Origin: Orbicella franksi
Lineage: Eukaryota
Assembly: GCA_964199315.1 (NCBI GenBank)
Contig: OZ116701.1
Span: 15,996,001-16,060,000 of the forward strand
Direction of reading: 5' to 3'
Length of the DNA stretch: 64,000 nt
Of the stretch, positions 22,593 to 58,395 are shown piece after piece (within the stretch, counting starts at the first letter, position 1; each line of letters opens with the position of its first letter). The notes beneath the pieces were generated by a model. That model saw only the letters and a list, made by a program, of their open reading frames with translations, was not told where the DNA came from and did no database searches. Made by a program: the position numbers and the translations under genes.

Positions 22593-22596
<4 letters not shown>

Positions 22597-31683: not shown

Positions 31684-31759
31684 TTAAAAGGTAATTATCA
31701 AGAGAAGTTGCTACCACCGCGCCTGGATTGAATTGCTTCCTCTGTCAGTTCACGATTAG

Positions 31760-31930
31760 TTATGTTGGACACTCCCAGTAGTGAATGTAACAATACATCT
31801 GGGAGTCCCCACTAGTCAGAGTACCCTTGCATGTACACGTGTATTTTCTTTTTCCACAAGATATGCTGCTCGAAAGTGTCACAAATTTTGCGTCATTCGA
31901 GTCACAGTTAACACCAAGAAACTTCTTACC
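31760..31930 (-). CDS. G3 exon 5 (last; Cys-rich domain)
   Basis: CAG|GKKFLGVNCDSNDAKFVTLSSSISCGKRKYTCTCKGTLTSGDSQMYCYIHYWECPT*; 171 nt. Confidence 0.9.
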   Translation of the reverse strand, partial: GKKFLGVNCDSNDAKFVTLSSSISCGKRKYTCTCKGTLTSGDSQMYCYIHYWECPT

Positions 31931-32050
31931 CTGCAACATATAAAATATAGTCGATGAAGTTAATAACAAAAGAATTTATTTAACATATTGCGTAATTTCA
32001 TGTTTCATAGGGAAAAAGCCAGACTTTACTATAATTACTTTTAAACCTAC

Positions 32051-32239
32051 ATTTAATTCAGTTTTTTCGACGACTGCGGTTGCATATGTATCCGGGGTTT
32101 TGCCAGCGCTGGATCCTTTTACGTAAGAACAAAGTGTCAGATTGCCAGAGCCAGGTGATCCGGGGGGTCCAGGAGGGCCCTGGGTACCATTGTATCCAGG
32201 TGGTCCCTCGGGAAGCGGAGCTTTACTTGCATTAGTCAC
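32051..32239 (-). CDS. G3 exon 4 (short collagen, ~7 triplets, plus start of the Cys-rich domain)
   Basis: TTCCAG|[63 protein letters not shown]|GTAGGT; 189 nt; phase 0-0. Confidence 0.9.
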
Positions 32240-34393: not shown

Positions 34394-34912
34394 CTTTGAA
34401 TGATGCTCACAATGCGAGGAGTGATATTCGTCTTCCGCTATGTCCCTGTTCTTCTACTCAAACACCAAGGAAAGTGATAGTCCTTCAGTCACGCACGTTC
34501 CGTCATTTGATATTACGTGTCAACCTCAGTTTCTATTGTTAATGAATATTCCATTGGAACAGGCAGAGGCGGGTTAACTTTCAGTGTTGATTTATTTTTT
34601 AATTACCTCTAAGTTATCGTTTGGAGATAAAGGTATTTGAACTCTTCCCGACTTTAATATACACATTCTGACTAATGAAAACTTATTTAATCTTTAGAAA
34701 ACTTTTTTTACGGCCAGTATACCGTTGCTTAAAGTGTCTGAAAGAAAGTTTGACTTATTCGAATAGGCAATAGCGAATAGTACGAATAGTAACGAATAGT
34801 CGCCAATATTAATAGTCACCGCTTTAGTTCAGCACTAATCTGGATTCGTTGAAATTACCCCGTGGAGCAATAGCGTTTATCCGCGGACGCTGATAGATTC
34901 GACCACTGGCTG

Positions 34913-35116
34913 TAGATTGCAAGTAGTCTCTCTTTCGCTTAGACCTTCGTGCGTGACGCGAAAGAAAACCGCCAAAGAAAATGGCCGCGCGAACTCCTGG
35001 GGACGAAAAGCACGCGCGCGTCTCGCCCTCTGGATTTCACGCGACCATCTTTTTCCTCGCTGTTTATTTACGGTCTCGCTCGACGGACTAAGCGAAAGAG
35101 GGACTACTCGTAGTCC
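34913..35116. mobile_element. Short TIR MITE (TAGA(C/T)T(A/G)C..AGTAGTC..CTCTTTCGCTTAG termini); paralog at ~48895-49092
   Basis: Inverted termini GTAGTCTCTCTTTCGCTTAG / CTAAGCGAAAGAGGGACTAC. Confidence 0.6.
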
Positions 35117-35257
35117 AACCAAGCTGAAGAAATTGTATTTCATAGATATATTGTTCCCAAGGCAAGTAGTCGTTTGAATTTTATCATCTGTGCAGTTGTC
35201 GCAGTATAGTTTGTAGCTGTTATTATAATTTAGGGCGAAAAAAGTATTTCATATTAA

Positions 35258-35795
35258 GGTGGCTGAACACAGTTTTTGATACCTGTGTTTCATTCACCTT
35301 TTTCTCTAAAACCCTTGATCCCTCGGTCGCCAGAAATGGCAGCAAGCAAGTTAGCAACACAAACTTTGACTTTTTGATGGTTAAGCTGACGTATGTGCCG
35401 TTGCTATGGCAACATGAATAAATATAAACAGGCCTTTAAAATCGGTTTTGTTTATTTTAGAAAATCTAGTCATTAGATGTTCTTAATAATGTACATGCAA
35501 CAAGCTTGTAACGATTCTCACAAGTTAACACCATTTTGCTAATAATTTAACAGAGGGATCTTCAATTATCCCTTTTTGAAGGTTCACTGGAATATTTAGA
35601 ATTTCCTTTGTTAAAGTTTAATTATTTTCCATACTCCAGTTACTTATTTCCTAAAGTGTTTTCGTGCCAAATTTCGTGAAATTCTAATGGGTGGTTCTCG
35701 AAAAATAGGCGTATTTCCGAGAGTGAAATTTTTCATTCAATCGCAATTTTTTTGACTTACTACGCATGCGCTGCATTTGCAATCCTTGTGCGCGA
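35258..35795. mobile_element. TTAA-flanked insertion with only one recognisable TIR (GGTGGCT...)
   Basis: TTAA at 35254-35257 and 35796-35799. A single TTAA empty site (CATATTAAGCTATC) is present in the paralog at ~49228-49241. Confidence 0.75.
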
Positions 35796-36616
35796 TTAAG
35801 CAATCTTGGACTCATTTTTTAGTTAGGGTTCGACGTTAAGTACAGTATTTTTATAGTTTGATTTCTCAGTTTTTTTTCTTGGTTGGTTTTTCCTATTCCG
35901 TAAAGATTTTAGGCCAGCAGGCTGGTTTTCCACCGACTAGACTCGTAACTCCTCTTAATATCAGCCAGACAATTACTATTCGCTCAGATTGCAGAGGATT
36001 TCAAAGGAGATTTACGTGAACGTCATTGTTTACATTTTGTTTAATTAGCGACTTTGCTTAGAAAAGGAATCATACTATACACAGATTGACTTCAGATCGG
36101 TTGTTTAAAGAGCCTGGGAAAATTCTCAGCGAAAATTTTAGAATTTCCTGTGTAATATTGAAGGGAATATTAGGTTTAAACCCTGCACAATTCGTGTGGC
36201 AAAAAGCGCTAATTAGCTTACACAGTCGCTAGAAAATTTTGATTTTTTTAAACCCAGATCACACAAAAAGTATTAAACACATAGGGCTCAAATTTCTAGC
36301 GAAAGTTATTCTTGTCGTGTTCTTCAGTATTCAAAACTGATATGTAGCTTGAGTAGAGACTGAAACGCTTATGTCAATGAATCAAAGTTAAACACGACTT
36401 CTTACTCCACCTTAGAGAAATCAAATAAAGGCCGTGTTTTGTCCGCTGTGCTGTGCATGTTATTAACAAATTTTTCGGCCGAGGACATTTAAAACAGTAA
36501 TAGATAGCATTCATCTGCTATTATTCGCCACTCTTAGCGACTATTAGCGACTGTTGACTATTATTCGCACTATGCGAGACTATTCGCACTATTCGCACTA
36601 TTCGCTATTCTCTTTT

Positions 36617-36674
36617 CGCGATTAGTATATACCGCGATTAGTATATACCGCGATTAGTATATACCGCGATTAGT
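36617..36674. repeat. 16-bp tandem repeat CGCGATTAGTATATAC x3.5
   Basis: Read directly; single-copy in the paralog near 50085. Confidence 0.8.
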
Positions 36675-37465
36675 GCTTTTCGCGAATTCTGATTGGTTAC
36701 TCAAAGCTGGCACGGTGAAGGTCGTATGCAAAATGGCTTCCCGGTTTGCTACCGTGGCAGAAGAACAAATTTTAGCGGTAAACGAGCCGGCTGCCAGCCG
36801 TCCCTGAGAACACTTAGGGGGCTACAAAATTCGGCTTGAGAGGTTTTTACAGGTACGGTTTTATTATTCTTAGCCATGAAGTTATCCGGCCCTAAACCGA
36901 CACAAAACGATTTGTTTACAATTGCTAAGTTACGTGAAAGTTATCGTTTTGAGGTAGCGAAATTAAAGCAATGTCAACAGTGAAATTTTATAAAATATCT
37001 TACGGAATGGTTTCAAATGCAGGAAGAATTCACAACTCGCTTAGAAGAAATGTCGGCAGAGCAACTCAACAAGTGCCTTCAAAAGTTTTACCTGTCCGCA
37101 TGAAAACCGAGACGGCAGTCTTTATAAGAAGAAGTCCCTTACTGCAATTCGGACCGCTTTGGACCACCACTTGAGAAGTCCTCAGTTGTACAAACCGTTT
37201 TCTATTGTTGAAGGCAGCCAGTTTACCGTGTTTACTGTGCTGTCGTTTCACTAAACACACGAGACACGTTATGATTTCTATTTTTGATCACTGGATGTAT
37301 TATGTGACTCTTCTGACATTTTGCGCGCGAACTTACGAAAAAAAAAAGATTTTTTGCAGTCTTCTGAGTCAATTTTTGCGGATGTTTTATCCTACTGCTT
37401 TGGTATATACTTAAACAATTATTCCCCTCAGTGTCGGTGGCTAGTAGTGGATATTTACCGAGTCG
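36670..37465 (+). mobile_element. Degraded Crypton-related (DUF3504/tyrosine recombinase family) relic
   Basis: Broken frames give MASRFATVAEEQILAVNE.. and ..LEEMSAEQLNKCL.KFY... that match the paralog at 50103-50870. Confidence 0.6.
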
Positions 37466-37879
37466 GGCTTTTGCCGTCCCCCTCCCCGACCCGACAAGGT
37501 GTTACAAGGAAAATATGCCACGCCTAGTTATTGTTGCAATTGTTTAATTGTATTTTCAAATACATCATTGTAATCATGGTAGCTTGTTACATGCATGTCT
37601 TTATATATGTGTTTTATTACGCAATGATCATTATACAACTGTCTTAATCAGAGTCAATGGCCTTCCCTGTTGTTCTTTCAGCGAACGAGAAAGCGAAAAA
37701 TATGTATCTGTAGTCGACCATTTTATGTCTACAAAGCGCCAAACTTAATAACATTATTCTATCTGCACTGCCTTAAAATGTTTTTTCAGAACGTTAAAAG
37801 TAATAACGTTGTAATGCGTCATAGTTAGGCATTAACCATACGCAGTCATCAATGATTCGTATGCACTATATTCATATCT

Positions 37880-38282
37880 CGGGAAGGGGGCACTCCCTTA
37901 TATGGCCTATGCAGGGAGGCTCCGGCCGTAAGGGCTACCTTTTTCAGGCTTCAGGTATATAAAAGCGTAGAGATTTCACTAGGTGAGGCATATGAAAAGG
38001 TAGAGAAATCTGTCATTTAGTTATTTTAAAAGGCCTTTAATTAAAATTTTTTGAAAAAATGCACCTTATTGCTGTATCATTTCATTTATCAGGCACTACA
38101 TGAAAATGACAAGAAGACTTTGTTTTTGGCGATTTATTCTTAATACAGGCCAGTCTTGAAAGTATGTCCAAGGTATACGAAAGGTTCATCTTTTCTGTCA
38201 AGATGGTTTACAGAAGGGCAAGGGGCTGGACCTTGGGAGGAAGCATCCCCGTATTGAACTTTGTAGAGTAGCATCCCCTCCG
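37880..38282. mobile_element. Non-autonomous element with G-rich/C-rich termini; paralog at ~51340-51742
   Basis: GGGGGCACTCCC...GAGTA..CCCCTCCGG ends and internal inverted GGGAGGCTCC/GGAAGCATCCCC; resembles a common anthozoan MITE. Confidence 0.5.
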
Positions 38283-38662
38283 GAACTAACCGACGCATGC
38301 CACCGACCAACTTGGATTCCCTGTCCGGGCTTGAATTGCCTGTCTAATTTTCCGTAATATATTGTACGATTTCCTCCTTACAATGATTTTGGATTAACTG
38401 AATCAGATTGCTGACAGGGTAGTGCTAGCTGCAGCAGCAGAATTTATTTACATTGCCTTTACATCGCACGATGACTGACCTCTTCTCGAGATAAACTGAA
38501 TACAAATGATAGACTGTTCCAGTATTGATGACCAATTTAAAGTCCATTACGAGCTTATAAACTTATATAGACGGCACTTTAGAGGCCCTGTTTTTAATTT
38601 AAGAGGGTCTATTTTCTAGCTCAAATGAAATGATGCTCTTTTTAACAGCATTTCTGTGCCTC

Positions 38663-39030
38663 AGGCCCAGTCCACACTACGCTGGAGAAATTCGAAAACG
38701 GCGGTTTTACTTTGAAGACGCAGAAAATGTTTTCCGTCCACACTAGGAGAAATTTGAAAATGCAACAATCACCGGCGGAAGAAATGCTTGGCAGCAACCT
38801 TGAGGTTATGGGTTAATCACACGATTATCGTGACGATATCGTTTTCGAAAAGCTTTGTTTTCAAGATGCTCGCCGTTCAAACTTAAACTTCAAATTCCTG
38901 TGAATGGCAGAGAAGTTTCGAAAGCTCTGTTTTCCGTGGTCAGTTTCTCGGAGTTAGTGTTGACGGTGGGCCTAGTCGTAGAAATAAAGCTTCCTTCTCA
39001 AATTTCTCCAGCGTAGTGTGGACAAGGCGT
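38663..39030. mobile_element. PIF/Harbinger-like MITE; paralog at 52123-52491
   Basis: AGGCCCAGTCCACACTACGCTGGAGAAATT / AATTTCTCCAGCGTAGTGTGGACAAGGCGT TIRs. Confidence 0.7.
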
Positions 39031-39301
39031 TAGTTTCCACTGAAGGATATTTCGATCCATTCCTTGCGAACAACAAAATGGCCTATTGTGCGTATCTTGA
39101 TTAACTTTAAGTTTGTTTTAGTAAATACGTAATACGTTAAGATTGTGGGGGTATATCTAAAAACAAAGACATTTTAACTAAAGAGATACGCCCACTATGG
39201 TGGTGTGGGCTAATGCGCCCCTGGTGCGTTGTTCCTCTGTCCCATGTAGGGTTACAACAGTGATTTTTTGATGCTGAGGTTAAAACATGATTTCTCTCGT
39301 T

Positions 39302-39472
39302 TTAGGCTGGACACTCCCAGTAGTGAATGTAACAATACATACTATGGTCTCCACTGGCGATACCACCCTTGCAGGTACAAGTGTAAGTTCTCTTGCCACC
39401 AGAGATGGTGCTTGAGAGCAGCACTGTTTTAGCGTCATTCGAGTCACAGCTGACACCAAGAAACTTCTTTCC
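39302..39472 (-). CDS. G4 last exon (Cys-rich domain)
   Basis: CAG|GKKFLGVSCDSNDAKTVLLSSTISGGKRTYTCTCKGGIASGDHSMYCYIHYWECPA*; 171 nt. Confidence 0.9.
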   Translation of the reverse strand, partial: GKKFLGVSCDSNDAKTVLLSSTISGGKRTYTCTCKGGIASGDHSMYCYIHYWECPA

Positions 39473-40593
39473 CTGCAAAAAATAAATAAGTTTATGCAAT
39501 TACCTTTGCGAGTTGATCAAAATAATAGTATTGCATTGGTTAGTCAACAAACATGCCTCTTTCTCCGCAGTTCTAATATATGATCTACCAGATATTCACT
39601 TGTACTCTTTTCTACAGGTATACACATTAGGAAGAAATTACGTAACCAGCTCCTAGTTGGTTTGGTCCTGAGGTGGTGACTTTCCCTTTTCTTATCTTAC
39701 TATGTCAGGAGCACTACCTATGTATAGTTTTTATCTGTACAATTTATATACATTTTTTTGACACTCTTATACATTCCTAGATAGTTTAGTTTAATATTTA
39801 TAACCAATTGTACATAAATTTTTACTTTGTTACTTTGTTTCCTTGGCGCACCTGTAAACTAGCTGGTGCGTCCTGTAGACTCTGCTTATCATATCTATGG
39901 GAAGCACCGTTACCATAGCTAAGAGTGTGGTCCAAGTAAAATAAACTGTCTGTGTCTATGTCTATGTCTATACACAAGAGCGAAACCATATTCTACCGCG
40001 CGTGCACTAGACCTTTCCTATCAATAAAAATATTTTTCAAAATGCTGATCAACTGAGCCTGACAATACTAATTGTTAGTATAGAATTATTGTATTATTGA
40101 ATAGTGTTGTAAATAATGTGCATTCCAATGATAAAAAGAAAAGTTTGCATTTGCCATTTCCTCGGCTCTTGGCACGGGCTGCACGTGCCATGCAACAACT
40201 TATCATAACTGAAATTAGCATAATTTGGTAAGGAGTAATGAAGATTGATTTTCCTCTGTTTGTAATTAATTAGTAATCTAGTTTCCATTGGCCTCACTAG
40301 TAAGATTTTCGGTTAATTTAGTTCCAGGAAACGCGATACTCATCTACCCTAAACTCCATTGTGCCACTAGAACTATAAAAATGAAAAAAAAAAAAACTAC
40401 TACGCCCATACGAAGATAAACCAGCACATCGTATTCTCGGTAATGGACTGGAACTAACTTGCAATAGAGGCTCCTGCGGGGGAATATTATTAAAAAGAGA
40501 TGAACGTCATTTGCATTAGAAAAGATTCCTCGCATTAGCTTCAGTTGTAAGCTAGTGAAGAATTTGAATATGGCCTATTACTTTGTGACGTAC

Positions 40594-40875
40594 ATTTGAT
40601 TCAGTTTTAGAGATCGATTGACGCGCATAAGCCGGATCCGCAACAACGCCAGAGCTGGCTCCTGTATTGTAAGAACAAAGACCCAGATTGGCAGAGCCAG
40701 GTGTCCCGGGGGATCCAGAGAAGCCCTGAGAGCCATTGTATCCTGGTAGGCCGGGAGGACCAGTGAGGCCTTGGGTACCATTGTATCCTGACGGTCCGGG
40801 AGGTCCAATGGGGCCCTGGGTACCATTATATCCTGGCGATCCCTTGGGACCTGAAATGTTACTTATGTTCATTAA
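40594..40875 (-). CDS. G4 collagen exon (18 triplets)
   Basis: TTTCAG|[20 protein letters not shown]...[38 protein letters not shown]|GTACGT; 282 nt; phase 0-0. Confidence 0.9.
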
Positions 40876-43672
40876 CTGAAATGAGAAAAAAAAAAAAAAA
40901 AAAAAAAAACCATGTCAGCTGCGAAGTGAGCCCCCTTTCAGCTGCATAATAGTCTGAAATTGAATCTAGTTGAGAATGTGGTTGACCAGAAAACCTGCAC
41001 TGTCAATGGGCCCTTTGCACGATCCAATGACATACTACGGAATTGATTATGCTGGGACGCAAGTTACACAGTGGGACTCTAAAAAAAAAGGAAAGTTGGG
41101 CTGGGCTGGTACGAGTTCCTTTGTTTTGGAAGTCCTACTCACGGTGTAAGTTGTGTCCCAGCATAGCTAATTTCGTATCATGGGACCGGATCGTGCAAAG
41201 AGCCTACTATTTTAAGGTGTCTAGTAACGGTTTTAAGCACTAGCAGCACCTATACTTTGATGGATCACATAGCTACTCTTTCTCAGTATGTGCCAGAATA
41301 ATGGGATCCAGCAAATCCCCATGCATTTATTGGCAAGCAAGTTCCGGTCATTTTCTGGCATAATAGGTTACTATAGCAACCGGGGTACAATTTCAATCAT
41401 CTGCAGTTTTAACTTTACTAGCTTTTCACCCAAATCAAGCCCGTATAAAGATTTTTGAACTATTATTTTCCGCCTACTTCTGATGTTTTTAACAGTCTTC
41501 TCCCTCTACCTTCTCTTCCAGCTGTAAATTTTTTTATCGAAGAGCCTGTATTGCGAGCCAGAGGTCTCGTGTATTTTGTTCCTAACAGTAGAGAACGAAC
41601 AATCTATATCGAGATATTCAGATGTTCAGTGAGGGGCAGCATAAATATGAATTTATTTTTACAAATCATATTTGGACCGTTCGAGGGCTTTCTTTTAATC
41701 TCCTGTATTTCTCTTGTTGATGAGGCAATTTAGGTCTACTGCTTTACCAAGTGGACAAATTGAGGTTACTCAAATTAAGTTTTGAGATGTCCAATTCTCA
41801 CCAGCGAACCAAAATTTCTTATCCCTTATTACCCTGTTAAAGCACGGTTGCCTCCATTAACGAAGAATTTTAACTATTTTAGCGATTAGATCGATAAGTA
41901 AACTAAAAGAAGTGTGACAGGGGAATGGTCACAGTAAATGTGTTACGAAGCTCCATAATTTTATAGAATTCAGTATGTTTGCATGTTGGTTCGTGACCAC
42001 CAACTCTTTATTTTTCGGCCGACACACTCATCGTCTAATCCAGTAGGTAATGAACACATTCTAAAATATCCTATATGGTAGGCATGTGTGGGCACACCCT
42101 GGACGATTAAACACTGATCCTTTAGGAATACTTACCCAAACACGTCTATGCGACCTTCAGAAGCGATCCTTATGAAATTTCCAGATTGAATCCATCGATT
42201 TATTCGGGGTCTATTTTCTGAGTTTGATCGGTTCTTGATTTGGGAAATCGACAATAGCGTAGAACTGATTCATTCAGATTTGTGATTATTTTATAGCGAA
42301 CGAAGATTTTCTCATTGGTCATTTCCGAGCAAAACTTCCTCCAAATTATTGGCACTCTTTCAGAGAAAACCAAATTCGCAAAGGACTGTTTGCTTTGAAA
42401 GTGTAAGGATATCTTAGCTCTTAGCCTTTGTCCTTTTATCCTTTGCCTCCAATGTGACAGACGAAGAAATTATTTTATAAGTTAATGACTGAAAGGTAAG
42501 CTTTTGACTTCTGACTTGATTGGACGTTGCCTTTATCAGCTGCAAGAAAACTGATCATTCATTCATTTATTTTATTTTAATTACTGACAGGAAATATGGA
42601 TTTAACAGCCAAGTGGACCTGCATTTTTTTTTGCTCCACGTTGAAGGCTTCTGTCAATTACAAACTAGATTGGCTGTGTCTGCCTTGTGGCTGCTCGTTG
42701 TTTTTGTAATGTTGCTGTTCTTGCAACTCGTTTCGAAACGACTGAGTACTCTAAGTGCCCTATCGAGCCATAATTGCGGCCGAGACACGCCGCATCATTG
42801 TATAGCACAGGCTATATTTTGGTAACAACAACCAACCAGGTCGCTCACGATGAAGAAAACAAAGACCCCGTCATGATTGTTGAACTGTTTCCCTTTTTCT
42901 ACGTTTCATTACCTAGCTTACTACCTAGCAGTAACAGTATACTTTTGTTAATTGTGGCATGGTTTGGAATTAATTCATTTTGTTTCTTTGATTGCCTTGT
43001 AGTATTCTCATATTTTCCTATTGTTTGGCATGGACAATTTACTTTGTTTTGTCAGATGTCTATATTTTTGTCCTTCTAATTCACTCGGTGCCTACGTAAT
43101 TTTGTCTGTCAAGTTTGTTACGTTTGAAATCTCGGCAAATATACATTATGAGTAACCCTCATTTTGTTTCTTAAGCATCGCTACGATGCTTAATCTAAGA
43201 AGAGGGACATGTCATGAATCCATTAATCTTCGTAGAATTAAGTATTTTTGGTTTGTGATTATCAGTTGTTAACCATTTTGTAGCTACCGCCTTAGTCTGC
43301 CCGCACAGAAAACTTTAGATTGTTTGTCTTAGTTCATTAAGAGCGCTCCGCTCCGCTCCGAACAAAGACCTCCACTGAATGGTTATGTTCGGGTTCGTCT
43401 ACTGGCCTTGGTCTGGATCTCGAAAGGAAGATCGTCAACCTGTTCAGGTTTCTCGTTCTGTAAACTTAAGCGATTATTGGTTGTTTCAAGAATTTCAGCT
43501 GCAGTTCGCTTCTGAAGATCTCGTGAAAGTGTTTGTGGTCACTGGCTAGGTAGATTAGATGATGATTGTGTCAGCCAGAAGCCTGTTAAAATAGAAAAGA
43601 CTGAAGTCTACTTTCCCGGTCTCTCTTCGTTCGACAGCAGTAAACCAACACATGTTCTAAATCATAACCTAC

Positions 43673-43734
43673 CATTTTGTCACTTGCCAAGGACTGGACA
43701 TGAGAAATGTTGTCCTTCATTTGCTTCAGCTCAA
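43673..43734 (-). CDS. G4 exon 2
   Basis: GGCAG|(V)ELKQMKDNISHVQSLASDKM|GTAGGT; 62 nt; phase 1-0. Confidence 0.8.
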
Positions 43735-44722
43735 CTGCCAAATCCGTTAATGAAGACAGAAAAGAAAACAGAAAGCAAAACGTCTTTAATGAATGAATGA
43801 CTGAATGTTAGGCTGTTATGACCCTGTCAACATCAAAGGAGGTTCGTATACTTCTTCAAATGATACGAAAGCCGAATTTGCCACAGGAAACAAAACATCG
43901 AGCCGTGCTTTCTACTATCCAGCTTCTATTTTGGATGTTAAAATAATTCTTGCATAAGCTATTGAGCACCAAAAAACATCATGCGCAACCTAACGGTGAG
44001 AAAAAAATTTCGTGCCCTAAAAAATTGCCCAACCTTGTCAAAAAAATAATGGTCCTTTGCTAACATGCAGCGGCTTTCGCTGCGAGAGTTCGCTGTGAAT
44101 TGTGAAAGTCAATGAATTTAGTATCAAAGCTTCTTCTTTACTTGATATATCAATGATATCAAGGATTTGATTTCGCTTAAGATGCTCTTCTAAAAGCATT
44201 TGAAATCCTTTAATGACTTCTCAGTGGGTATTCTCGATGTCTTTTTCAGCCATTTATTGGGCTATTTCGTCTTCGCTAAACGTTGAAATCTTTCATGCAA
44301 ATTTTCTAGCCTCCTGTTGCGTGATGCCAATCGTGGACTAATTTTTATTTATTATCACGCAATTTGTCAGTCGTTTAGATAATAATGAAAATTGTAATGT
44401 CCCAATGATGTATACATTCCAAATTAGCTCAGCCTTATGTAGCGTAGTCTAAACGAGACCAAACGATGATAACGAAACGGTTTTAATAAAGCTCATAAAA
44501 GCCCGTCATTACTAGCCGTAATACAACAACAACTACATCTGGGATACATCTCACTCTAGCTACTGCGCAAGCCCGAAGGGACTATGACAATATAACATCG
44601 TTACACCTTACTTCTAAAAAACTCATCGGGCGATCTCGACAATCATATACGGGGAATGAATAAATATACCACAAACTGCGACGATCAGGTCACAACATCG
44701 ATTACATCTTGACCATCTTTAA

Positions 44723-45705
44723 GGGGTAGGATACCCTCAAATGGACCAAAAAGTTTGTTTAAATATGGTGAAGAAAGATCAATTGTGTGCTATTGCGCTC
44801 AAGAAGAGAAATTAAATTTCTAGAGTTTTACTCAAAAGGGTTGCTATGGAAACCAGCCACAGCCTTTTGAGGTAGTGTTTTATAGTATTAACGCCAACAC
44901 TCCCTGCTCTTTTACGAAACAAGATTTGACTGTCAAATAAGCATATCGTGTAAGTTTCTGTTTTGTTCTGTGCAATGAACCTAAGTTTTGACAGTTAACT
45001 CTTATCTTCAGTGCTTTTTACAGGCTTTATTTGGAAATAACCTTATTTTTTACCACACCCAGAGGAAAAATCATCTCATGTCACATCACGACACTATTGG
45101 TCTTTGATGAGCCCAAGTTTCGGGAATTCTACTTAAAAACCTTGCAAAGTAGAAATGTTGGCGCGAAGTCAGTCGGTACAAAAGTAAACTTTTGAGAAAA
45201 ATGCACTTTAAGTTTCTTACACGAAGTATTAAGCATTTAATAGCAAATAGCGGGGGGGGGGGTGCAGATTGGCTCTCGGGGGAGGGGATGCAATGGTTGT
45301 TCTATTTTGTAAAAAGTTACCGCAGTTGTGGGAAATATTCCTTTTCATAAGGGAAATGAATGAGCCTGTGATGGCAATTTGAGGCAATGCTTTTCACAAA
45401 TAATTATACCAATCGAGTTGTGCATGTCTTAAAAGTTTTTTCTAAATAGTCTCGTTCATATAAGTTAAAAATAATCTATTTTTTTGGTCACGTTCTTATA
45501 GTAAACAGTCGTTGCTATGGCCGTTGCTACGTGAAAAAACTTATACCACTGTGTACTTTCCTTAAATTTCACACTCATCTGGAAGGAAATTCGGCAAGAT
45601 CGTTTCAGAGTTTTTTTGACAAGTCCTCAAGGGTCTTAAGCCTGGTATTTCCAAGATAATTGAATTTTTCATGAACATCGCCGTATTTTAAGGTATCCTA
45701 CCCCC
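44723..45705. mobile_element. Non-autonomous TTAA-targeting element (Kolobok-like), ~983 bp
   Basis: TTAA-GGGGTAGGATACC...GGTATCCTACCCCC-TTAA. The empty site CATCGTTAATAGAGG is present at ~27955-27968. Confidence 0.85.
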
Positions 45706-46194
45706 TTAATAGAGGCAAATGGTTATGAAACCTGGCAAAGTTCTTTGTTGTATATTTTTGTTGGTTATTTTGGACCCTGCACAAACCTGGCGAAATAGAA
45801 AGGTGGTTATGTGTGCTCATACAACTAACCAATAGAAGCATTGCGATTATGTAATTCATACATAGCGAATGAGAAAAAAGGGAAAAGTTGTGCAGGGTCA
45901 AGGGCATAAATCTTAGCCTCTTTGTTTGTTTCTTTGAGGTTTACGAGGCTTCTTAATTACCATTCCCTCTATTAACTAAACTTCTTTAAATTTGGTACTT
46001 TAGTGCAATTTGTTCGGCGAATATGAAACCTGCCGAGTTGCTTGCGAAAAGCGTTCCCAAGAATTGTCTTAATATTGCCATCAAATTATTTTAATTACAG
46101 CGGTCATGAGTGAGTTGGTCGACCATCAAGTAAAATTTGCATAAAAAAGATATTTTGGTTAATGCTTTTTCTCAGTACTCGTGATTTAACTCAC

Positions 46195-46528
46195 CATGCA
46201 CAATAGTTGAATCTTTTGAAGCAGTTGAGTTGTTTCGAGACAGCATCATTGTTAAAGCTAAAACCAAAGTGGCGACAGTTGTCAGGAAAGCAACAGCAAC
46301 GATAGCAGCTGCAATTAACAGCATTGGACGGAATGCCATTGTTTCCGGTTCTTTGACTGGTTGTCCTTTCTTCTTTGCCTCCTGCGCAGACGTCTCAATG
46401 CTCGCTCGTTTTGTTGCCGGGATTTTGCTGTTGACATTTACTTCACCGTAGGCTCTGGCTTCAGTTCCCATTTTGGATTCCATCTCGAAATAAACGTTGT
46501 CTGTTCCGACTTCTGCCTTATTCATCAT
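46195..46528 (-). CDS. G4 exon 1 (type A): cytoplasmic tail and TM helix
   Basis: MMNKAEVGTDNVYFEMESKMGTEARAYGEV...LIAAAIVAVAFLTTVATLVLALTMMLSRNNST...IVH-G|GTGAGT; 334 nt; phase 1. The assembled G4 protein is 282 aa. Confidence 0.85.
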
Positions 46529-46609
46529 TTAATGGTAAGGGATGTTCCTCCGCTTCCACAGTAATGTTGTGACTAAATCTCCAAACCTACGTCAAGTCAA
46601 AAACAAAGT

Positions 46610-46724
46610 TTCCCCGAAATCTTTTGATTTCGTCATGTGACGAGGCTTTTTGACATTTGTCTTCAGTATTTACATACCAGATCGGAACAAGTAGAAACGC
46701 GTTGCTTTTCGGAATTTCCCCGAA
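46610..46724. promoter_or_regulatory. Candidate GAS (46610-46618), M-box (46632-46641) and kappaB/GAS (46711-46724) sites upstream of G4
   Basis: TTCCCCGAA; GTCATGTGAC; GGAATTTCCCCGAA. Confidence 0.42.
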
Positions 46725-49700
46725 GCAATTGTCTGGAGACAGTCATCAAAGGTTTTTTTTGTAACAAACAAAGATAATGTGTATTTCTGTTCGAAACCAG
46801 ACGGTCATTAGTCCCACAGAATTTTTAAATATTTATATGACCTGTTGTTTGAAAAACATGGGCTGATAGCTGTTCACTCTAAATGCCAGCGACCTTCACA
46901 ACTTCGACGTTTTGATTGGCCTCCTAGCGTAGGATATTCATCATTGTCGGTACAGTTTCTTAGGTAAGAGATCAATAGAAAACGAAATCCCTGAGAATGA
47001 TTACGGAAAAACATTTAAAGAGAAAACGTCTAATCAAAGGTGTAAACTAGACGCTCTAAGAGCGTTGACTCGGGCTTCCTACCACAGTATCAAATCGTAC
47101 TTTACGAAAACGCCTATTGGACACCGTGTGACAATACAAGCAAACTAAAGAATCAGGATATTTTAGCACAAAAGTTCCGCTTAGATATTTGCTATTCAGG
47201 TTGCTTCGTTTAGTATCCTCCTCATCCTACCGCAAGTTGTGAGTTTAAACCATTTTGGTTCAAGAATGAAGCACAGCTGTCTACGCATTGATGGAGAAGT
47301 TGTTCGCAAAGAATTTACGAGGTCTTTTTACAACTTATGGCGATTACTTTGCACATGTTAGCAGAAATTGTACGAAGTTTGTTTACTGGTCTTGGCGATC
47401 CGAGTAAATTGTGTAGTTGAACATATTTGCCGTGTTGCGATCTTAAACCCTTTTCAAGAGTCATATCTTCTTTGGAGAGCGCACAATCCCTTTCGAGAGA
47501 GCCAAAACGAATCATGATAAACTCCTTCGCGAAAACAACAGTCCTGTGAATAGGCTCAAATTGCATTGCACATAATTTGCATAAACTTTCAAGTTGTGTA
47601 TTTTGCGGATAACTTCCAAGAATGTGCGAACCTTAACGCAGTTTATGAAGAAATATTCAAGCTACAAATTTTTATTGAATCAAGGCAAGAGTATTTTTTA
47701 AAAACGACTCTCATTTTTAAGGGAAGATGCGGCATTCTGTTTTGCTATTTATTTTGGTTTCATGCTCGTCTAGTTCATGTCACGCAACATGATTTTCTTT
47801 TACAGTCAGACACAGTTTTTTAAAAGAATTGGCGATTGCTAATTAAGACTGCTAAATATATTTGAACTACTAGTGAAATAACTGGCTAAACTATTGTAAA
47901 TGCAGATTTTCCTTAGGACTTGGCAAGAACATTGGTTCGTCAATAATCCCGCACAATTCCCCGCACAATCGAAGGTTTAATTCTCCCGCACAATGTGCCT
48001 CCAAACTCACACGTTTTTTTTTTTTTTCCTGCACCCTACTTGAAAGCCAACTAACTAGGAGGTAAGATATTTAACTCAAGTTACCGAAAGTCTTATCTTT
48101 ACAACATTGGAGATCGACATATTTTGCGCGGTGCAAGAAACAAGTCGTATGTTTTTAATGAGCTACGAGTCCAAAAACGTTTTCGTATTTAGCTCGTTTT
48201 ATTGCAATATGATTTGTTTTACTGCAATGTTCTAAATAATAACAGCAGTAGCCACATACCGTCATTGACTGCCTATTTTTTGCCAGTGTTTTCGTAGATT
48301 GAACTCATACCGCAATCGGCTCAGTTGATTGTTATCTCACGAGAACGTTTCGAACGTGAACTTTGCTTACCTGGTTGGCTTTCAAGCAATATAATTCGTG
48401 GACCGATTACAATCATGCTTTTTTGATATACAAATAGCATCGGGTCTTCAAATGTACCGCTTATTAATTGTGACCTAAACAAAGCTTTTGTTTGGAGCTG
48501 ATCGCGCGCTTTCATTTTCGTTTTATTATGGTAGGATAAAATCTTGTGTGAGTAACTGGGTAATAAATATGTTGCCTTTGTATGAACAGCAAATTAAAAT
48601 GGCTGCTTCAAGATTCTCATCTGACGTGCTGGAATTGTCTCATGGATCAATTTCGCAAGAAGAAAGCATAAAAGTAAAGAGTCCACTCGAGCCTGTAAAT
48701 GGCTGTGAGAGAAAGAGAGTAGCGAATAGGAAATAGTCGTGAATAGCGAATAGTACGAATAGTGCGAATAGACCGAATAGAGGCTAACAGTCGTCAAAAG
48801 TCACCGCTTTAGTTCAGAACTAATCTGGATTCGTTGAAATTATCACGTGGAGCAATAGCGTTTATCCACGGACGCTTATAGATTCGACCAAGCTGTAGAC
48901 TGCGAGTAGCCTCTCTTTCGCTTAGACCGCCTTGAGTGACGCGAAAGAAAACCGCGGGAAAAAAAAAAAAATGACCGCACGAACTCGTGGGGGCGTGCGT
49001 CTCGCCCCCAGGGTTTCACGTGGCCATTTTTTCGTCGCAGCTTAATTACGGTCTCGCTCGACAGACTAAGCGAGAGAGGGACTACTCGTAGTGTAACCAA
49101 GCTGAAGAAATTGTATTTCATAGATAAATTGTTCCCAAGGCAAGTAGTCGTTTGAATTTTATCATCTGTGCAATTGTCGCAACATAGTTTGTAGGTGCTA
49201 TTTTAATTTAGGGCGAAAAAAGTATTTCATATTAAGCTATCTTGGACTCATTTCAGTTAGGGTCCGAGAATAAGTACAGTATTGTTAGAGTTTGATTTCT
49301 CAGTTTTTTTCTTGGTTGGTTTTTTCTATTCCGTAAAGTTTTTGGGCCAACAGGCTGGTTTTCCCCCTGGCTGATATTAAGAGGAAATTACAAGCCTAGT
49401 ACAATTACCATTCACTCAGATTGCAGAGCTGAGAACTACAAAGGAGAGGTGTAGGCTGATTTATTTGAACGCCATTGTTTACATTTTGTTTAATTAGCGA
49501 CTTTGCTTAAAAAAAGAATTATGCTATATACAAATTGACTCCAGATCGGATGTTTAAAGAGTTTGTGAAAATTTTAAGCGAAAATTTTAGCACTTTCTGT
49601 CTAATGTTGAAGGTAATATTAGATTTAAACCCTGCACAATATGTGGCAAAAGCGCTAATTAGCTTACAGTCTCTAGGAAATTTTGATTTTTTACAAACCC

Positions 49701-50102
49701 AGGTCACAAAAAAGTATTAAACACGTAGGGCTAAAATTTCTAGCCAAAGTTATTCTTGTCATGTTTTCAATATTCAGAATTGATTTGTAGCTTGGTTAGA
49801 GACTGGAACGCTTATGCCAATGAGTCAAAGTTAAACACTGAAGACTTCTTATTCCACCTAACCGAAATCAAATGAAGGCCGACTTTTCTCCGTTGTACTG
49901 TACATGCTAAAAATAAATTTATCAGCCGAGGACATTTAAAACAGCGATGGATAGCATTCATTTGCTATTATTCCCCACTATTCGCGACTATTCGCGACTA
50001 TTCGCGAGTGTTCGCGACTGTTTGCCACTATTCGCACTATTCCAGACTATTCGCACTATTCGTACTATTCGCTATTCACTATTCGCGATTAGTATACACC
50101 AA

Positions 50103-50870
50103 ACCAGTGGATAGTGCTTTTTGCGACTTTTGATCGGTTACTCAAAGCTGGCGCGGTGAAAGTCGTAAGCAAAATGGCTTCCCGATTTGCTACCGTGGCA
50201 GAAGAACAAATTTTAGCAGTAAACGAGGCAGCTGTCCCTGAGAACACCAAGAAGGCTACAAAATTCGGCTTGGTGTTTATTACAGGTACTATTTTATTAC
50301 GGCCTAAACCGACACAAAACGATTTGTTTACAATTGCTAAGTTACGTAGAAGTAATTGTTTCGAGGTAGCGAAATGTCAACAATAGGGAAATTCTGTAAA
50401 ATATCTTGCAGAGTGGTATCAAATGCAGAAAGAATTCACAACTCTTTTGGAAGAAATGTCGGCAGGGCAACTCAACAACAGCCTTGAAAAGTTCTACCTG
50501 CCCGCAAGAAAACGAGACGGTAGCTTTTATAACAAGAAGTCCCGTACCGCAATTCGGCCCGCTTTGGACCACCACTTAAGAAGTCCTCCGTTGTACAAAC
50601 CGTTTTCTACTGTTTAAGGCAGCCAGTTTACCGTGTTTACCGTACTGTCGTTTCACTAAACACACGAGACAAGTTATGATTTCTCTCTTCGATCACCTGA
50701 TGTATCACGTGACTTTTCTTACGCTGTTGGACATTTTGCGCGCGAAATTGGGAAATAAAAGACTTTTTGCAGTCTTCTGAGTCATTTTTTTTTTTTGCGG
50801 ATGTTTTATCCTACTGGTTTGGTATATTCCCCTCAGTGTCGGTGGCTAGTAGTGGATATTTACCGAGTCG
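50103..50870 (+). mobile_element. Degraded Crypton-related relic (paralog of 36670-37465)
   Basis: ORF pieces MASRFATVAEEQILAVNEAAVPENTKKATKFG and LEEMSAGQLNNSLEKFYLPARKRDGSFYNKKSRTAIRPALDHHLRSPP resemble the N-terminal part of Crypton/DUF3504 proteins. Confidence 0.65.
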
Positions 50871-52771
50871 GGTTTTCCGCCCCCCTCCCCGCCCCGACAA
50901 GGTGTTACACGAGAAAATGTTTCGCGCCTAGTTATGCTTCTGTTGCAATAATACTGTACGTGAAAGTTATCATTCAGTTCTTTACAAAGTTGCACTTTTT
51001 TAATTGTGGTTTCAAGTATATTATTGTAATCATGGTAGCCTGTTTCATGCATGTCTTTATATATATGTTTTGCTAAGCAAAAATCATTATATAAATGTCT
51101 TAATCAGAGTCAATAGCTTTTTTCTCTGTTGTTCTTTCAGCGAACGAGAAAGCGAAAATATGTTTCCATAGTTGACTATTTCATGTCTTCAAAGTACTAA
51201 ATTTAATAACATTATCCTATCTACACTGCCTTAAAATATTTTTTAAAAACGTTTAAAATAAAAGCGTTGTAATGTGTCATAGTTAGGTATTAATAATACG
51301 CAGTCATCATTGATTCGTATGCACTATTCTCATATCCCGTGAAGGGGGCACTCCCTTATATGGCCTATACAGGGAGGCTCTGGCCGAAAGGGATACCTTT
51401 TTCATGCTTCAGGTATATAACAGCGTAGACATTTGACTAGTTGAGGCATATGGAAAGGTAGAGAAATCTGTCATTTAGTTATTTTAAAAGGCCTTTAATT
51501 AAAATTTTTTGAACAAATGCACCTTATGGCTGTATTATTTCATTTATCAGGCACTACATGAAAATGACAAGAAGACTTTGTTTTTGCCGATTTATTCTTA
51601 ATACGGGCCAGTCTCGAAAGTATGTCAAAGGTATACGAAAGGTTTATCTTTTCTGTCAAGATGGTATACAAAAGGGTAAAGGGCTGGACATCGGGAAGAA
51701 CCATCCCCGTATAGAACTTTGTAGAGTAATACCCCTCCCCCGGAACTAGCCGACGCATGCCACCGACTAACTTGGATTCCCAGCCCGGGCTTGAATTGCC
51801 TGTCCAATTTTCCGTGATATTTTGTACGATTTCCTCCTTACAATGATTTTGGATTAACTGAATTAAATTGCTGACAGGGTAGTGCTAGCTGCAGCAGCAG
51901 AATTTATTTACATTGCCTTTACATCGCAATATGACTTACATCTACTCGAGATAAGCTGAATACAAATGATAGACTGTTCCAGTATTGATGACCAATTTAA
52001 AGTCCATTACGAGCTTATAGACTTATATAGACGGCACTTTAGAGGCCATGTTTTTAATTTAAGAGGGCATATTTTCTAGCTCAAATGAAATGATGCTGTT
52101 TTTAACAGCATTTCTGTGCCTCAGGCACCGTCCACAATACGCTGGAGAAATTCGAAAACGGCGTTTTTAGTCTGAAGACGCAAAAAATGTTTTCCGTCCA
52201 CACTAGGAGAAATTTGAAAACGCAACAATCACCGGCGGCAGAAATGCTTGGCTGCAACCTTGAGGTTATGGGTTAATCACACGGTTATCGTGACGATATC
52301 GTTTTCGAAAAGCTTCGTTTTCAAGATGCTCGCCGTTCACACTTAAACTTCAAATTCCTCTGAATGGCAGAGAAGTTTCGAAAAGCTCTGTTTTCCGTAG
52401 TCAATTTCTCCGGGTTAGTGTGGACGGCGGGCCTAGCTGTAGAAATAAAGCTTCCTTTTCAAGTATTTCCGGCGTAGTGTGGACAAGGCCTTAGTTTCCA
52501 CTGAAGGACATTTCAGTCCATTTCTTGTGAACAACAAAATGGCCTATTGTGCGTGTCTTGATAAACTTTAAGTTTGTTTGTTTTAGTAAATACGTAATAC
52601 GTTAAGATTGTGGCCGTATATCTAAAAGCAAAGACATTTTAACTAAAGAGATACGCCCACTATGGTGGTGTGGGCTGATGCGCCCCTGGTGCATTGTTCC
52701 TCTGTCACACGTAGCTGGGTTAGAAATGTGATTTTGTGATGCTGAGGATAAAACAGATGATTCCTCTCGTC

Positions 52772-52942
52772 TTAGGCTGGACACTCCCAGTAGTGAATGT
52801 AACAGTACATATTATGGTCTCCACTGCTGATACCACCCTTGCAGGTACAAGTGTAGGTTCTCTTGCCATCTGAGATGGTGCTTGTGAGCAGCACTGTTTT
52901 AGCGTCATTCGAGTCACAGCTGACACCAAGAAACTTCTTTCC
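52772..52942 (-). CDS. G5 last exon (Cys-rich domain)
   Basis: CAG|GKKFLGVSCDSNDAKTVLLTSTISDGKRTYTCTCKGGISSGDHNMYCYIHYWECPA*; 171 nt. Confidence 0.9.
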   Translation of the reverse strand, partial: GKKFLGVSCDSNDAKTVLLTSTISDGKRTYTCTCKGGISSGDHNMYCYIHYWECPA

Positions 52943-53219
52943 CTGCAAAAAATAATTAATTCATGCAATTATCTTTGCATGTTGATCAAAATAATGGTAT
53001 TGCATTGGTTAATCAACAAATATGCCTCTTTCTCCGCAATTCTAATATATGATCTATCAGATATTCACTTGTACTCTTTTTTATAGCTATACACATTAGG
53101 AACAAATTACGTGACCAGCACCCAGTTGGTTGAGTAACTCAGTTGGTAGAGTGCTGAACTGTCGATTTTCCCTTTTCTTATCTTACCTATGCATAGTTTT
53201 TATATGTACAATTTATATA

Positions 53220-53220
<1 letters not shown>

Positions 53221-53253
<33 letters not shown>
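53221..53253. repeat. (ATT)11 microsatellite
   Basis: Read directly. Confidence 0.9.
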
Positions 53254-54083
53254 TTGATATTCTTATACATTTTTAGATACTTTAGTTTAATATTTATAAC
53301 CAATTGTGCATACATTTTCACTTTGTTATTTTTTTTTTCCTTGGCGCACCTGTAAACTAGCTGGTGCGTCCTGTAGACTCTACTTATCAAGTCTATGGGA
53401 AGCACCGTTACTATAGCTAAGTGTGTGGTCCAAGTAAAATAAACTGTCTATGTCTAGATCTATGTCTATACGCGAGAGCGAAACGGTATTCTACCGCGCG
53501 TGCATTAGACCTTTCCCATGAATAATAATATTTTTCAAAATGGTGATTAACTGTGCCTTGCAATTCTAATTGTTAATATATAATTATTGTATTATTATTT
53601 AGTATTGTAAATAATGTGCGTTCCAATAATAAAAAGAAAAGTTCGCATTTGCCATTTCCTCTGCTCTTGACAGGGGCTGCACGTGCCATGCAACAACTTA
53701 ACATAACTAAAATTACCATAATTTGGTAAGGAATGGTGAACTTTGATTTTCCTCTGTTTGTAATTAATTAGTAATCTAGTTTCTATTGGCCTTGCTAGTA
53801 AGATTTTCGGTTAATTTAGTTCCAGGACACGCGATGCTCATCTACCCTAAACTCCATTGTGCCACTAGAACTATAAGAATGAAAAAAACTACTACGCCCA
53901 TGCGAAGCTAAACCAGCACATCGTATTTTCGGTAATGGCCCGAACTAACTTGCAATAGAGGCTCCTGCGGGGAGTATCATTAAAAAGAGATGAACGTCAT
54001 TTGCATTTGAAAAGACTCCTCGCATAAGCTTCAGTTGTAAGCTAGTGAAGAATACGAATATGGCCTATTACTTTGAGACGTAC

Positions 54084-54365
54084 ATTTGATTCAGTTTTAG
54101 CGATCGATTGACGCGCATAAGCCGGATCCGCAACAACGCCAGGGCTGGCTCCTGTATTGTAAGAGCAAAGACCCAGATTGGCAGAGCCAGGTGTCCCGGG
54201 GGATCCAGAGAGGCCCTGGGAGCCATTGTATCCTGGTAGGCCGGGAAGACCAGTGAGGCCTTGGGTACCATTGTATCCTGGCGGTCCGGGAGGTCCAATA
54301 GGGCCTTGGGTACCATTATATCCTGGCGATCCTTTGGGACCTGGAATCTTACTTATGTTTATTAA
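54084..54365 (-). CDS. G5 collagen exon (18 triplets)
   Basis: TTTCAG|[20 protein letters not shown]...[38 protein letters not shown]|GTACGT; 282 nt; phase 0-0. Confidence 0.9.
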
Positions 54366-55469
54366 CTGAAATGAGAAAAACAAAAAAAAGAACAAAACAA
54401 AACAGAACAAAATAGCGCTACAACGTGCCACTCACTGAAACCATGTCACCTGCGAAGGGAGCCGCTTCTCAGCTACATAATAATAAGTCTGAAATTGAAT
54501 CTACTTGAGATTTTGGATGACCAGAAAACCTGCACTGTCAATAGGCCCTTTGCACGATCCGGTGACATAGTATGGAATTAACTTTGCTGGGACGGAAGTT
54601 ACACAGTGGGACTTTCAAAACAAAGGAAAGTCGGACTGTACTGGTACGAGTTCCTTTGTTTTGGAAGTCTCACTCACGGTGTAACTTGTGTCCCAGCATA
54701 ATTAATTCCGTATCATGTCACCGGATCGTGCAAGAAGCCTGTTGTTTTAAGGTGTCTTGTAACGATTTAAGCACTAGCAGCACCTATACTTTGATGGATC
54801 ACATCGATACTCTTTCTCAGTATGTGCCAGAATAATGGGATCCAGCAAATCCCCATGCATTTGTTGCCAAACAAGTTCCGGTCATTTTTCTTGTATAATA
54901 GGTTACTATAGCAACCGTGGTACAATTTCAATCACCTGCAGTTTTAACTTTACTAGCTTTTCACCCAAATCAAGGCCGTATAAACAGTTTTGAACTATAA
55001 TTTGTCGCCTACTTTTAATGTTTTCAACAGTCTTCTCCCCCTACCTTCTCTTCCAGTTGTGAAATTTTTTGTCGAACAGCCTGAATTGCGAGCCAGAGGT
55101 CTCGTGTATTTTGTTCCTAAAAATAGAGAACGAAAAATCTACATAGAGATATTCAGATGTTCAGTGAAGGAAGCAGAAGAACCGTTAAACCTGTGCAGAA
55201 ATCATGCTCTATGTACAATTGCTTTTTGGGAAAGTATCTCCTACGTCTATTGAAAAATTACTTAATGGTTTACTTGTATGTAACTTCCATTTGACGAGTT
55301 ACTGCTGCCTGCAGAAGATACCTTTCCTTCAATCCCCTGCATCTGCAAAAAGAAGAGAATGTCAGGGAAACATTTGAGGACACTTATGTTCAAGTGAAAA
55401 TAGATAAATTGAGGGTTTTGTGTTCAATGAATTCCTGGACAATAGAAATCCCTTTGCCCTCAAATAATG

Positions 55470-55580
55470 AAAAGAAGAAGAAGAAGAAGAAGAAGACGAA
55501 GAAGACGAAGAAGAAGAAGATGCAGAAGAAGAAGAAGAAGAAGAAAAAGAAGAAGAAGTACAACAAGAAAGAAGACAACA
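55470..55580. repeat. Imperfect (GAA)n microsatellite inside a ~1.1-kb segment (55168-56294) absent from the paralog
   Basis: Read directly; the paralog at ~41627-41640 reads TCAGTGAGGGGCAGC without the segment. Confidence 0.85.
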
Positions 55581-58333: not shown

Positions 58334-58395
58334 CATTTTGTCACTTGCCAAGGACTGGACATGGGAAATGTTGTCCTTCATTTGCTTCAGCTCAG
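58334..58395 (-). CDS. G5 exon 2
   Basis: GGCAG|(A)ELKQMKDNISHVQSLASDKM|GTAGGT; 62 nt; phase 1-0. Confidence 0.8.

Follow-up and report, generated by a model that had tools for sequence, protein, structure and literature searches.

A receptor gene in a tandem cluster of the coral Orbicella franksi is very probably a chimera, with a type A 5′ end joined within intron 1 to a type B body

How does a gene in a tandem cluster of receptors come to carry the cytoplasmic tail of one type and the ectodomain of another? This question is raised by a 64,000-nucleotide stretch of the coral Orbicella franksi (assembly GCA_964199315.1, contig OZ116701.1, positions 15,996,001 to 16,060,000), hereafter the window, which is ~39% G+C eukaryotic DNA with an assembly gap at 16916-17048 and holds five related genes (G1 to G5) lying head to tail on the minus strand. 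An original prediction, made from the sequence alone, held that recombination had put a type A signalling tail and promoter onto the type B head of G4. We find this recombination supported by discordant trees, by a shared endpoint of two homologies and by a transcript contig, such that G4 is very probably a true chimeric gene in which a type A promoter, 5′ untranslated region (5′UTR), exon 1 and ~507 bp of intron 1 are followed by a G5-type body and 3′ flank. The tail has been swapped as predicted, while its signalling is something we infer from conserved tyrosines.

The gene model for G4, and its intact type B relative G5, are as follows.

39302-46550, minus strand: G4, five exons, a splice-site model checked against transcript contig L005
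46195-46550, minus strand: G4 exon 1 (type A), open reading frame and GT donor read in the sequence, 5′UTR of at least 22 nt
43673-43734, minus strand: G4 exon 2 (type B; VELKQMKDNISHVQSLASDKM), 20 residues 100% identical in amino acids to G5
41510-41581, minus strand: G4 exon 3, 72 nt, phase 0-0
40594-40875, minus strand: G4 exon 4, collagen Gly-X-Y repeats and first half of the C-terminal Cys-rich domain
39302-39472, minus strand: G4 exon 5, second half of the C-terminal domain and stop codon
52772-60324, minus strand: G5, intact type B relative, exons 60324-59961, 58395-58334, ~55792-55760, 55342-55274, 55116-55045, 54365-54084 and 52942-52772

The coding sequence of G4 exon 1 (46528-46195) comprises 111 codons plus one base, ending in phase 1, and encodes the membrane anchor and a cytoplasmic tail with tyrosines Y12 and Y26. 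Its amino acid identity is 82% to G1 and 76% to G2, and 41-42% to G3 and G5. Exon 4 (Pfam PF01391, Collagen, E=7.6e-11) is 91% identical to G5, and exon 5 is 93% identical to G5 and 79% to G3. Read in order, the protein has a cytoplasmic N-terminal tail, one hydrophobic anchor, a short heptad-like stalk, a Gly-X-Y run and an 88-residue C-terminal domain, with all splice sites and the head cysteines in exons 4 and 5 intact. First exons in all five genes end in phase 1, and the predicted in-frame join was borne out. The predicted exon scheme held for the five exons of G4 and not for the type A genes, which own intermediate exons, including a type A exon 2 that we located with a related full-length type A transcript, P0064 (G1 ~4440-4345, G2 ~22350-22260), and, with the same guide, further stalk exons of their own.

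To place the junctions we used self-BLAST of the window for segment homologies and base-level alignments that included four type A reference introns, which together resolve the following segments.

34761-44705, minus strand: type B unit of G4, colinear with G5 48741-59201, BLAST blocks at 82-90%
44705-44706: B/A recombination breakpoint in intron 1, with one base (C) of microhomology
44706-44722, minus strand: type A intron piece of 17 bp between the breakpoint and the insertion, its last four bases being the TTAA target site
44723-45705: insertion of 983 bp, best read as a non-autonomous piggyBac-like miniature inverted-repeat transposable element (MITE), TTAA duplicated at 44719-44722 and 45706-45709
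45706-47049, minus strand: type A segment right of the MITE, holding exon 1 between ~520 bp of promoter and the initial ~490 bp of intron 1
47050-48740: segment X, between the type A promoter piece and the G5 downstream region
5751-6081, minus strand: G1 exon 1 (type A), intron 1 continuous through the breakpoint-equivalent 5115/5116
28458-28788, minus strand: G2 exon 1 (type A), intron 1 continuous through the breakpoint-equivalent 27944/27945

On the type B side, the unit, copied from G5 or shared with it, runs from distal intron 1 through exons 2-5 and on into 4.5 kb of intergenic DNA, and its sub-blocks nearest the join (43000-44425 and 44611-44705) match G5 57657-59097 and 59106-59201 at 82-89%. 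Its left end at 34761 falls inside a CGAATAGN-type repeat patch just upstream of the G3 promoter. On the type A side, 45706-47046 matches G2 27959-29327 at 85.1% and G1 5130-5279 plus 5470-6628 at 78-85% (84.6% for the latter block), and boundary alignment places a sharp upstream end at ~47049. At the join itself G4 reads CATCGATTAC up to the breakpoint and ATCTTGACCATCTTTAA after it, followed by the 983-bp MITE and then TTAATAGAGGC; G5 at the corresponding site reads CATCGATTAC and then TAATTGCG; and G1, G2 and two type A loci from a related coral (L006 and L007) read GTCA(C/G)TC and then ATCTTGACCA...TTAATAGAGGG, with TTAA empty. The breakpoint is thus borne out to the base, its position at 44705/44706 being ambiguous by only the shared C. 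The type A introns of G1 and G2 continue leftward as had been predicted, and so do those of L006 and L007. Beyond the one shared base, the A and B introns have no detectable similarity at the join, which is therefore non-homologous. A Lepore-type product of non-allelic homologous recombination was accordingly rejected, the crossover not lying within similarity between the parents.

Only the TTAA insertion at 44723-45705 interrupts the type A stretch, again as predicted, and the 17 bp to its left (44706-44722) are identical to G2 at 16 of 17 positions and to G1 at 15 of 17, in register with the homology that resumes past the MITE; the B/A junction therefore lies in unique sequence and not at a repeat edge. 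The MITE has terminal inverted repeats of 13-14 bp, GGGG(G)TAGGATACC, and its empty site is an intact single TTAA in G1, G2, L006 and L007. The one MITE open reading frame that was checked (45031-45195) had no Pfam match, and self-BLAST found no second copy in the 64-kb window. Exact look-ups of the open reading frames at 45701-45907 and 44041-44199 gave no matches.

Does the junction exist outside this assembly? A 21-mer across the join, used to scan JGI metagenome contigs, matched Ga0126338_10114110 (L004, 1184 bp), which corresponds to window positions 43663-44845 at 99.24% with eight mismatches and runs from exon 2 through type B intron, across the join and past the 17 type A bases into the left 123 bp of the MITE. 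The other match to the junction 21-mer (L003) was a chance one, sharing no further similarity with the window. An ENA contig (L001) reaches across the upstream boundary of the type A sequence, covering 45889-47461 at 98.5%. Each half of G4 differs by 10-18% from all other copies in the window, which means that the gene was not stitched together from reads of G1, G2 and G5. The G4 junction is not an assembly artefact, and misassembly or a haplotype switch, the hazard named alongside the original prediction, is answered by the independent contig that crosses it.

Evidence that the chimera is expressed comes from a transcript-like JGI contig of 988 nt (Ga0099803_1543990, L005), found by protein search and encoding P0073 (263 amino acids). 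It is colinear with 46550-46195, 43734-43673, 41581-41510 and 40875-40377 of the window, at identities of 95.5, 96.8, 98.6 and 97.8%, respectively, with its positions 1-356 falling on G4 exon 1. Exons 1, 3 and 4 of L005 are closer to G4 than to any other copy, and the short exon 2 is about equally close to G5. The joint of exons 1 and 2 reads CATG followed by TTGAGCTG, is spliced from 46195 to 43734 exactly as predicted, and carries the TT of G4 where G5 has CT; exon 2 is then spliced straight to exon 3, without two small exons that are absent from G4. Because of this colinearity, the G4-specific TT and the skipping of the lost exons, we take L005 to be a G4 transcript and not an assembler hybrid. 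Starting 22 nt upstream of the ATG, within the type A 5′UTR, and with its reading frame open through exons 1-4, it confirms that chimeric G4 is transcribed and spliced in frame from exon 1 (A) to exon 2 (B), exon 3 and exon 4. As L005 differs from the window by 2-5%, it derives from a divergent allele or a sister species, and the chimera therefore predates that split.

The two parts of the protein also have separate histories. In the exon-1 peptide tree, G4, P0073 and two metagenomic variants form a clade (99/98) nested within the type A clade (100/98), which also holds G1, G2 and the transcripts of both, with Oculina P0066 just outside the type A clade and G3 and G5 elsewhere; forcing G4 exon 1 with the G5 group was rejected by the approximately unbiased (AU) test (p=0.004). 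In the ectodomain tree, G4 and P0073 fall inside the G5 clade (100/100), and an AU test holding the type-A-tailed genes together was rejected (p=1.3e-14). Separate trees for exon 1 and the ectodomain, the comparison proposed with the original prediction, are thus discordant with strong support.

Seeing a join of this kind, we considered how it may have formed. A type A tail may have been transferred to the head, or a copy of the head may have come to lie beneath a tail and promoter already in place; since both parental types persist, the event was duplicative. The most economical history, we infer, has two junctions (44705 and 34761) and a type A body replaced by a copy of G5. Here a resident type A gene would have suffered a break within intron 1, and repair would have used the neighbour G5 as template, starting in mid intron 1, proceeding across the body and taking in 4.5 kb beyond it before rejoining just upstream of the G3 promoter at 34761. 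The join would have been made by non-homologous repair with one base of microhomology in a phase-1 intron, which kept the frame, and the route may have been either a replicative template switch or illegitimate unequal exchange with subsequent deletion; the repair mechanism and the identity of the resident partner are likewise conjectural. Synonymous divergence between G4 and G5 in the ectodomain is 0.085, and in exon 1 it is 0.089 for G4-G1, 0.111 for G4-G2 and 0.096 for G1-G2; the values on both sides of the join are similar, which makes it about as old as the G1/G2 split. Later changes to G4 were the loss of two stalk exons, the arrival of the TTAA MITE at a distance of 17 bp from the junction and, in the present assembly, a nonsense mutation within exon 3.

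Several observations weigh against reading G4 as a working chimera formed by replacement of a type A body. An in-frame TAA stands in exon 3 at 41536-41534 in this assembly (CAA in L005, the sole mismatch in that exon), so that the G4 allele of the window may be null or a pseudogene; exon 1 has a ratio of nonsynonymous to synonymous divergence (dN/dS) of ~1 among type A copies, with no sign of tail constraint beyond the invariant residues; L005 retains intron 4 and ends without exon 5, so no complete mature mRNA was seen; support for G4 from other samples consists of assembled contigs; and the sharp type A boundary at 47049, followed by segment X, fits a three-junction capture about as well.

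That capture is the alternative that survives best, and we consider it possible if somewhat doubtful. It makes G4 a plain duplicate of G5 whose 5′ end captured a 1.36-kb type A fragment (44706-47049) through junctions at 44705, 47049 and 48741, whether by templated insertion at the duplication junction or by an ectopic patch, two routes to the same product. A type A segment that is short and sharp at both ends accords with it, as does the G5 downstream region that begins, past X, exactly where the G4/G5 unit starts; it nonetheless needs one junction more than body replacement under a resident type A gene. Sensitive BLAST of X and the G5 upstream region found no homology supporting a conversion patch, and as X is not homologous to that region, a simple patch with homologous flanks is excluded. 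Upstream homology between G1 and G2 itself ends only ~215 bp further out, and the boundary at 47049 may therefore be an unrelated indel. In the same sensitive search X (47050-48740) had no other match within the window, and in L006 and L007 only its part 47788-47957 is matched, at 78% and inverted relative to the gene.

Rather unlikely, in our view, is that G4 is a functionless chimeric pseudogene, a dead by-product of the rearrangement. Besides the exon 3 nonsense codon and the tail dN/dS, this draws on the two nonsense codons of neighbouring G2 and on the loss of two stalk exons, which lies at the following junction.

41631-41632: deletion junction, 1.13 kb of G5 (55167-56292) missing from G4

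The deletion took two small stalk exons of 33 and 69 nt, which sum to 102 nt, so that their loss preserves the frame, and skipping of the 72-nt exon 3 would keep it too; the nonsense codon therefore truncates the window allele unless this symmetric exon is skipped. Set against a dead gene are the CAA of L005 with its frame open through exons 1-4, an ectodomain dN/dS of 0.44 between G4 and G5 and of 0.54 between G4 and L005, the intact splice sites and head cysteines, and transcription of G4 from the type A 5′UTR.

It is very improbable that the G4 arrangement is ancestral and that recombination instead gave G5 its type B exon 1. Pairwise homology alone gives no polarity, and G3 intron 1 is too diverged to serve as a guide to continuity with G5 across 59201. 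The homology of G4 to G5 and that of G4 to the type A genes nevertheless stop at the same nucleotide in G4, an endpoint explained by one junction in G4 and not by a rearrangement of G5, and in four type A introns from two species type A sequence runs on where that of G4 stops; together these make G4 the derived form. Pairings in the family agree, with B exon 1 and B exon 2 joined in G3 and in G5-like transcripts, and A exon 1 joined to A-type exons in G1, G2, P0064, P0070 and Oculina P0066. As both Oculina P0066 and the full-length P0064 pair an A tail with an A-like ectodomain, an outgroup with type A exon 1 on the G4-type exon 2, the other possibility attached to the original prediction, was not what we found. 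Least credible of all is an assembly error or haplotype switch at a repeated MITE, which the position of the junction just 17 bp from a 983-bp repeat-type element might suggest and which is countered by type A sequence that flanks the MITE left and right, together with a proper TTAA duplication, by L004 spanning the join and L005 joining exon 1A to exon 2B, and by the divergence of both halves from all other window copies.

What, then, did the chimera put together? The family consists of type II membrane proteins in which a tail and one anchor lead into a coiled stalk and a collagen triple helix, both short, and the head is a Cys-rich beta sandwich of 88 residues; the membrane topology follows from a tail and a ~28-residue hydrophobic stretch with no signal peptide, as read from the sequence. 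Database relatives of these proteins are mostly from stony corals (Oculina, Desmophyllum, Pocillopora, Stylophora, Porites, Orbicella, Acropora), with a Nematostella protein among the weaker matches and the closest named proteins in Oculina patagonica, and automatic names of coral members are MARCO-like, scavenger receptor class A-like and collectin-12-like. The head domain spans the end of exon 4 and exon 5 (40594-40700 and 39305-39472) and has invariant cysteines (C..C..CxC..C.IHYWEC) with an HYWEC motif. Exon 5 and family members gave no Pfam family for the head, and it had no PDB sequence match; the same Pfam searches and the head model gave no match to an SRCR or C-type lectin domain. An AlphaFold2 model of the head (predicted local distance difference test 92) is a six-stranded beta sandwich, for which all Foldseek E-values exceeded 0.07 and the best fold matches were the PCSK9 C-terminal module (Z 7.0) and resistin/RELM (Z 5.3), Z values that are common for unrelated models. 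The resistin-like fold suggested by the model is thus only a weak lead.

Tail alignment showed Y12 and Y26 to be invariant in A, B and other related tails, with sequence around the first tyrosine that separates the types. Type A tails and most other family members have N-x-Y-F-E-M and type B tails N-L-Y-x-E-L; more fully, B tails read (E/D)(E/D)NLY-x-EL ... IYD(D/V)(V/P) and A tails DN(V/I)YFEM ... Y(G/D)(E/D)(V/G). An immunoreceptor tyrosine-based activation motif (ITAM) consists of two YxxL/I motifs 6-12 residues apart, and a hemITAM of YxxL/I after acidic residues. Compared with these, the coral tails have V, P or G at the end of the second motif, a spacing of 10-11 residues and, in type A, M at +3. 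Different SH2 domains prefer YxxM and YxxL, each of which is also a sorting signal of the Yxx-hydrophobic kind. The A (YFEM) and B (Y-x-E-L) tails may thus differ in signalling, and G4, driven by a type A promoter, would combine a type A tail with a shortened stalk and a G5-type head.

Tails and ectodomains are decoupled well beyond G4. A third tail class (C), unrelated to A and B, occurs in P0076 and in Oculina P0071 and P0091, whose tails are 52-69% identical to each other; each of these proteins sits in a different ectodomain clade, beside A- or B-tailed proteins. In the ectodomain tree, holding the C-tailed proteins together was rejected at p=3e-38 and the B-tailed ones at p=4e-5, in tests on groups defined by tail type and chosen after the tree had been seen. 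No type C tail exons were found in the window, and C-tailed transcripts therefore come from other genes, leaving alternative first exons here as no explanation. Tail and ectodomain histories are decoupled across the three tail types, and these comparisons suggest tails that appear older than the split from Oculina and ectodomains that cluster by lineage, a pattern that points to repeated body replacement or concerted evolution, with G4 as the one case that has a readable joint. We hold it as a tentative but plausible idea that G4 exemplifies family-wide repeated replacement or homogenisation of ectodomains under three old tail classes, a modular system like vertebrate paired receptors that evolved independently in cnidarians.

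How does G4 compare with known systems? Hybrid genes in tandem arrays include haemoglobin Lepore and anti-Lepore, the glycophorin GYPA-GYPB hybrids and hybrid KIR and Ly49 receptors. G4 resembles these in having its 5′ part from one paralogue and its 3′ part from a neighbour, with one breakpoint, the frame kept and the promoter swapped. They arose by homologous unequal crossing-over in similar sequence, whereas the G4 join has one base of microhomology and both parental types persist. In its architecture the family is like SR-A1, MARCO, SCARA3/5 and collectin-12, which are type II proteins with a short N-terminal tail, coiled stalk, collagen triple helix and small C-terminal head, and the coral proteins are presumably trimeric like class A scavenger receptors and membrane collectins; the coral head, unlike theirs, is neither SRCR nor C-type lectin. 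Vertebrate paired immune receptors present similar ectodomains on different signalling tails. The coral family likewise has related ectodomains on three tail classes with decoupled phylogenies, and differs in that its A and B tails are homologues with both invariant tyrosines in common, opposing (activating versus inhibitory) signalling not being in evidence. Drosophila chimeric genes formed by tandem duplication and exon shuffling are described in two reports (PMC5460883, PMC2211543). G4 shares with them a partial gene copy fused to the 5′ end of another gene, a non-coding duplication breakpoint and an expressed product, and differs in that its partners are diverged members of one family, such that homologous modules were swapped and not unrelated domains.

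Our literature searches turned up no description of this coral family or this chimera. The kind of event is itself well known, and what G4 adds is proof from a transcript, an allele with a nonsense codon, the loss of exons and, at the level of the family, a decoupling of tail from head. G4 is a base-resolved natural exchange of exon 1 (promoter, tail and anchor) between diverged paralogues with in-frame splicing shown, and implies that non-homologous repair within a phase-compatible intron suffices to re-pair a receptor head with another tail and regulatory region. Together with the family-wide discordance this suggests a route by which apparently coral-restricted, trimeric surface receptors may diversify, and it makes G4 and G5 a pair with nearly the same head and different tails (YFEM vs Y-x-E-L).

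The type A loci of the related coral, L006 and L007, lie on one 191-kb contig (ENA ERZ25067546, ctg57774), where an identical 160-amino-acid open reading frame covers type A exon 1 twice, ~59 kb apart. Additional upstream partial copies of the exon 1 region occur in L006 (~4856-5500) and L007 (~2808-3453 and ~4998-5643), and type A promoter and exon 1 fragments therefore multiply on their own in that coral.

Elsewhere in the window, G2 is 93-94% identical to G3 over its 3′ part, from the end of the collagen exon through the last intron and exon into the 3′ flank (17843-18498 vs 30899-31071 plus 31683-32170), against a background of ~75-85% between gene types. The two neighbours differ in their tails, and this tract is probably a recent gene conversion between them; a further 612 bp (31071-31683) is present in G3. 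In this assembly G2 has two in-frame stops, TAG at 22289-22287 in type A exon 2 and TAA at 18180-18178 in the last exon, and in another sample the G2-like transcript P0070 has an open frame across the first stop site and ends before the second. Just downstream of the last exon of G2, near the gap at 16916-17048, a partial second copy of that exon (..CKGTQAKGDSRMYCYIHYWECP) occupies 17771-17878. The collagen exon of G2 (18503-18829) is an expanded tandem array of ~45-bp units encoding GYNGTQGxPGPPGPP, as a result of which its triple helix is much longer than in G3, G4 and G5. Inverted repeat pairs occur within the long intron 1 of G2 (22586-23525 vs 25494-24554, 99.7%) and between G1 and G2 (11928-12705 vs 13731-12954, 98.3%; 9682-9910 vs 10523-10293, 95.7%), and these three long near-perfect pairs are probably recent transposon insertions or foldback elements. 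Upstream of G5, 62014-63355 is a block of short tandem and inverted repeats with a period of ~45-55 bp and 78-85% identity.

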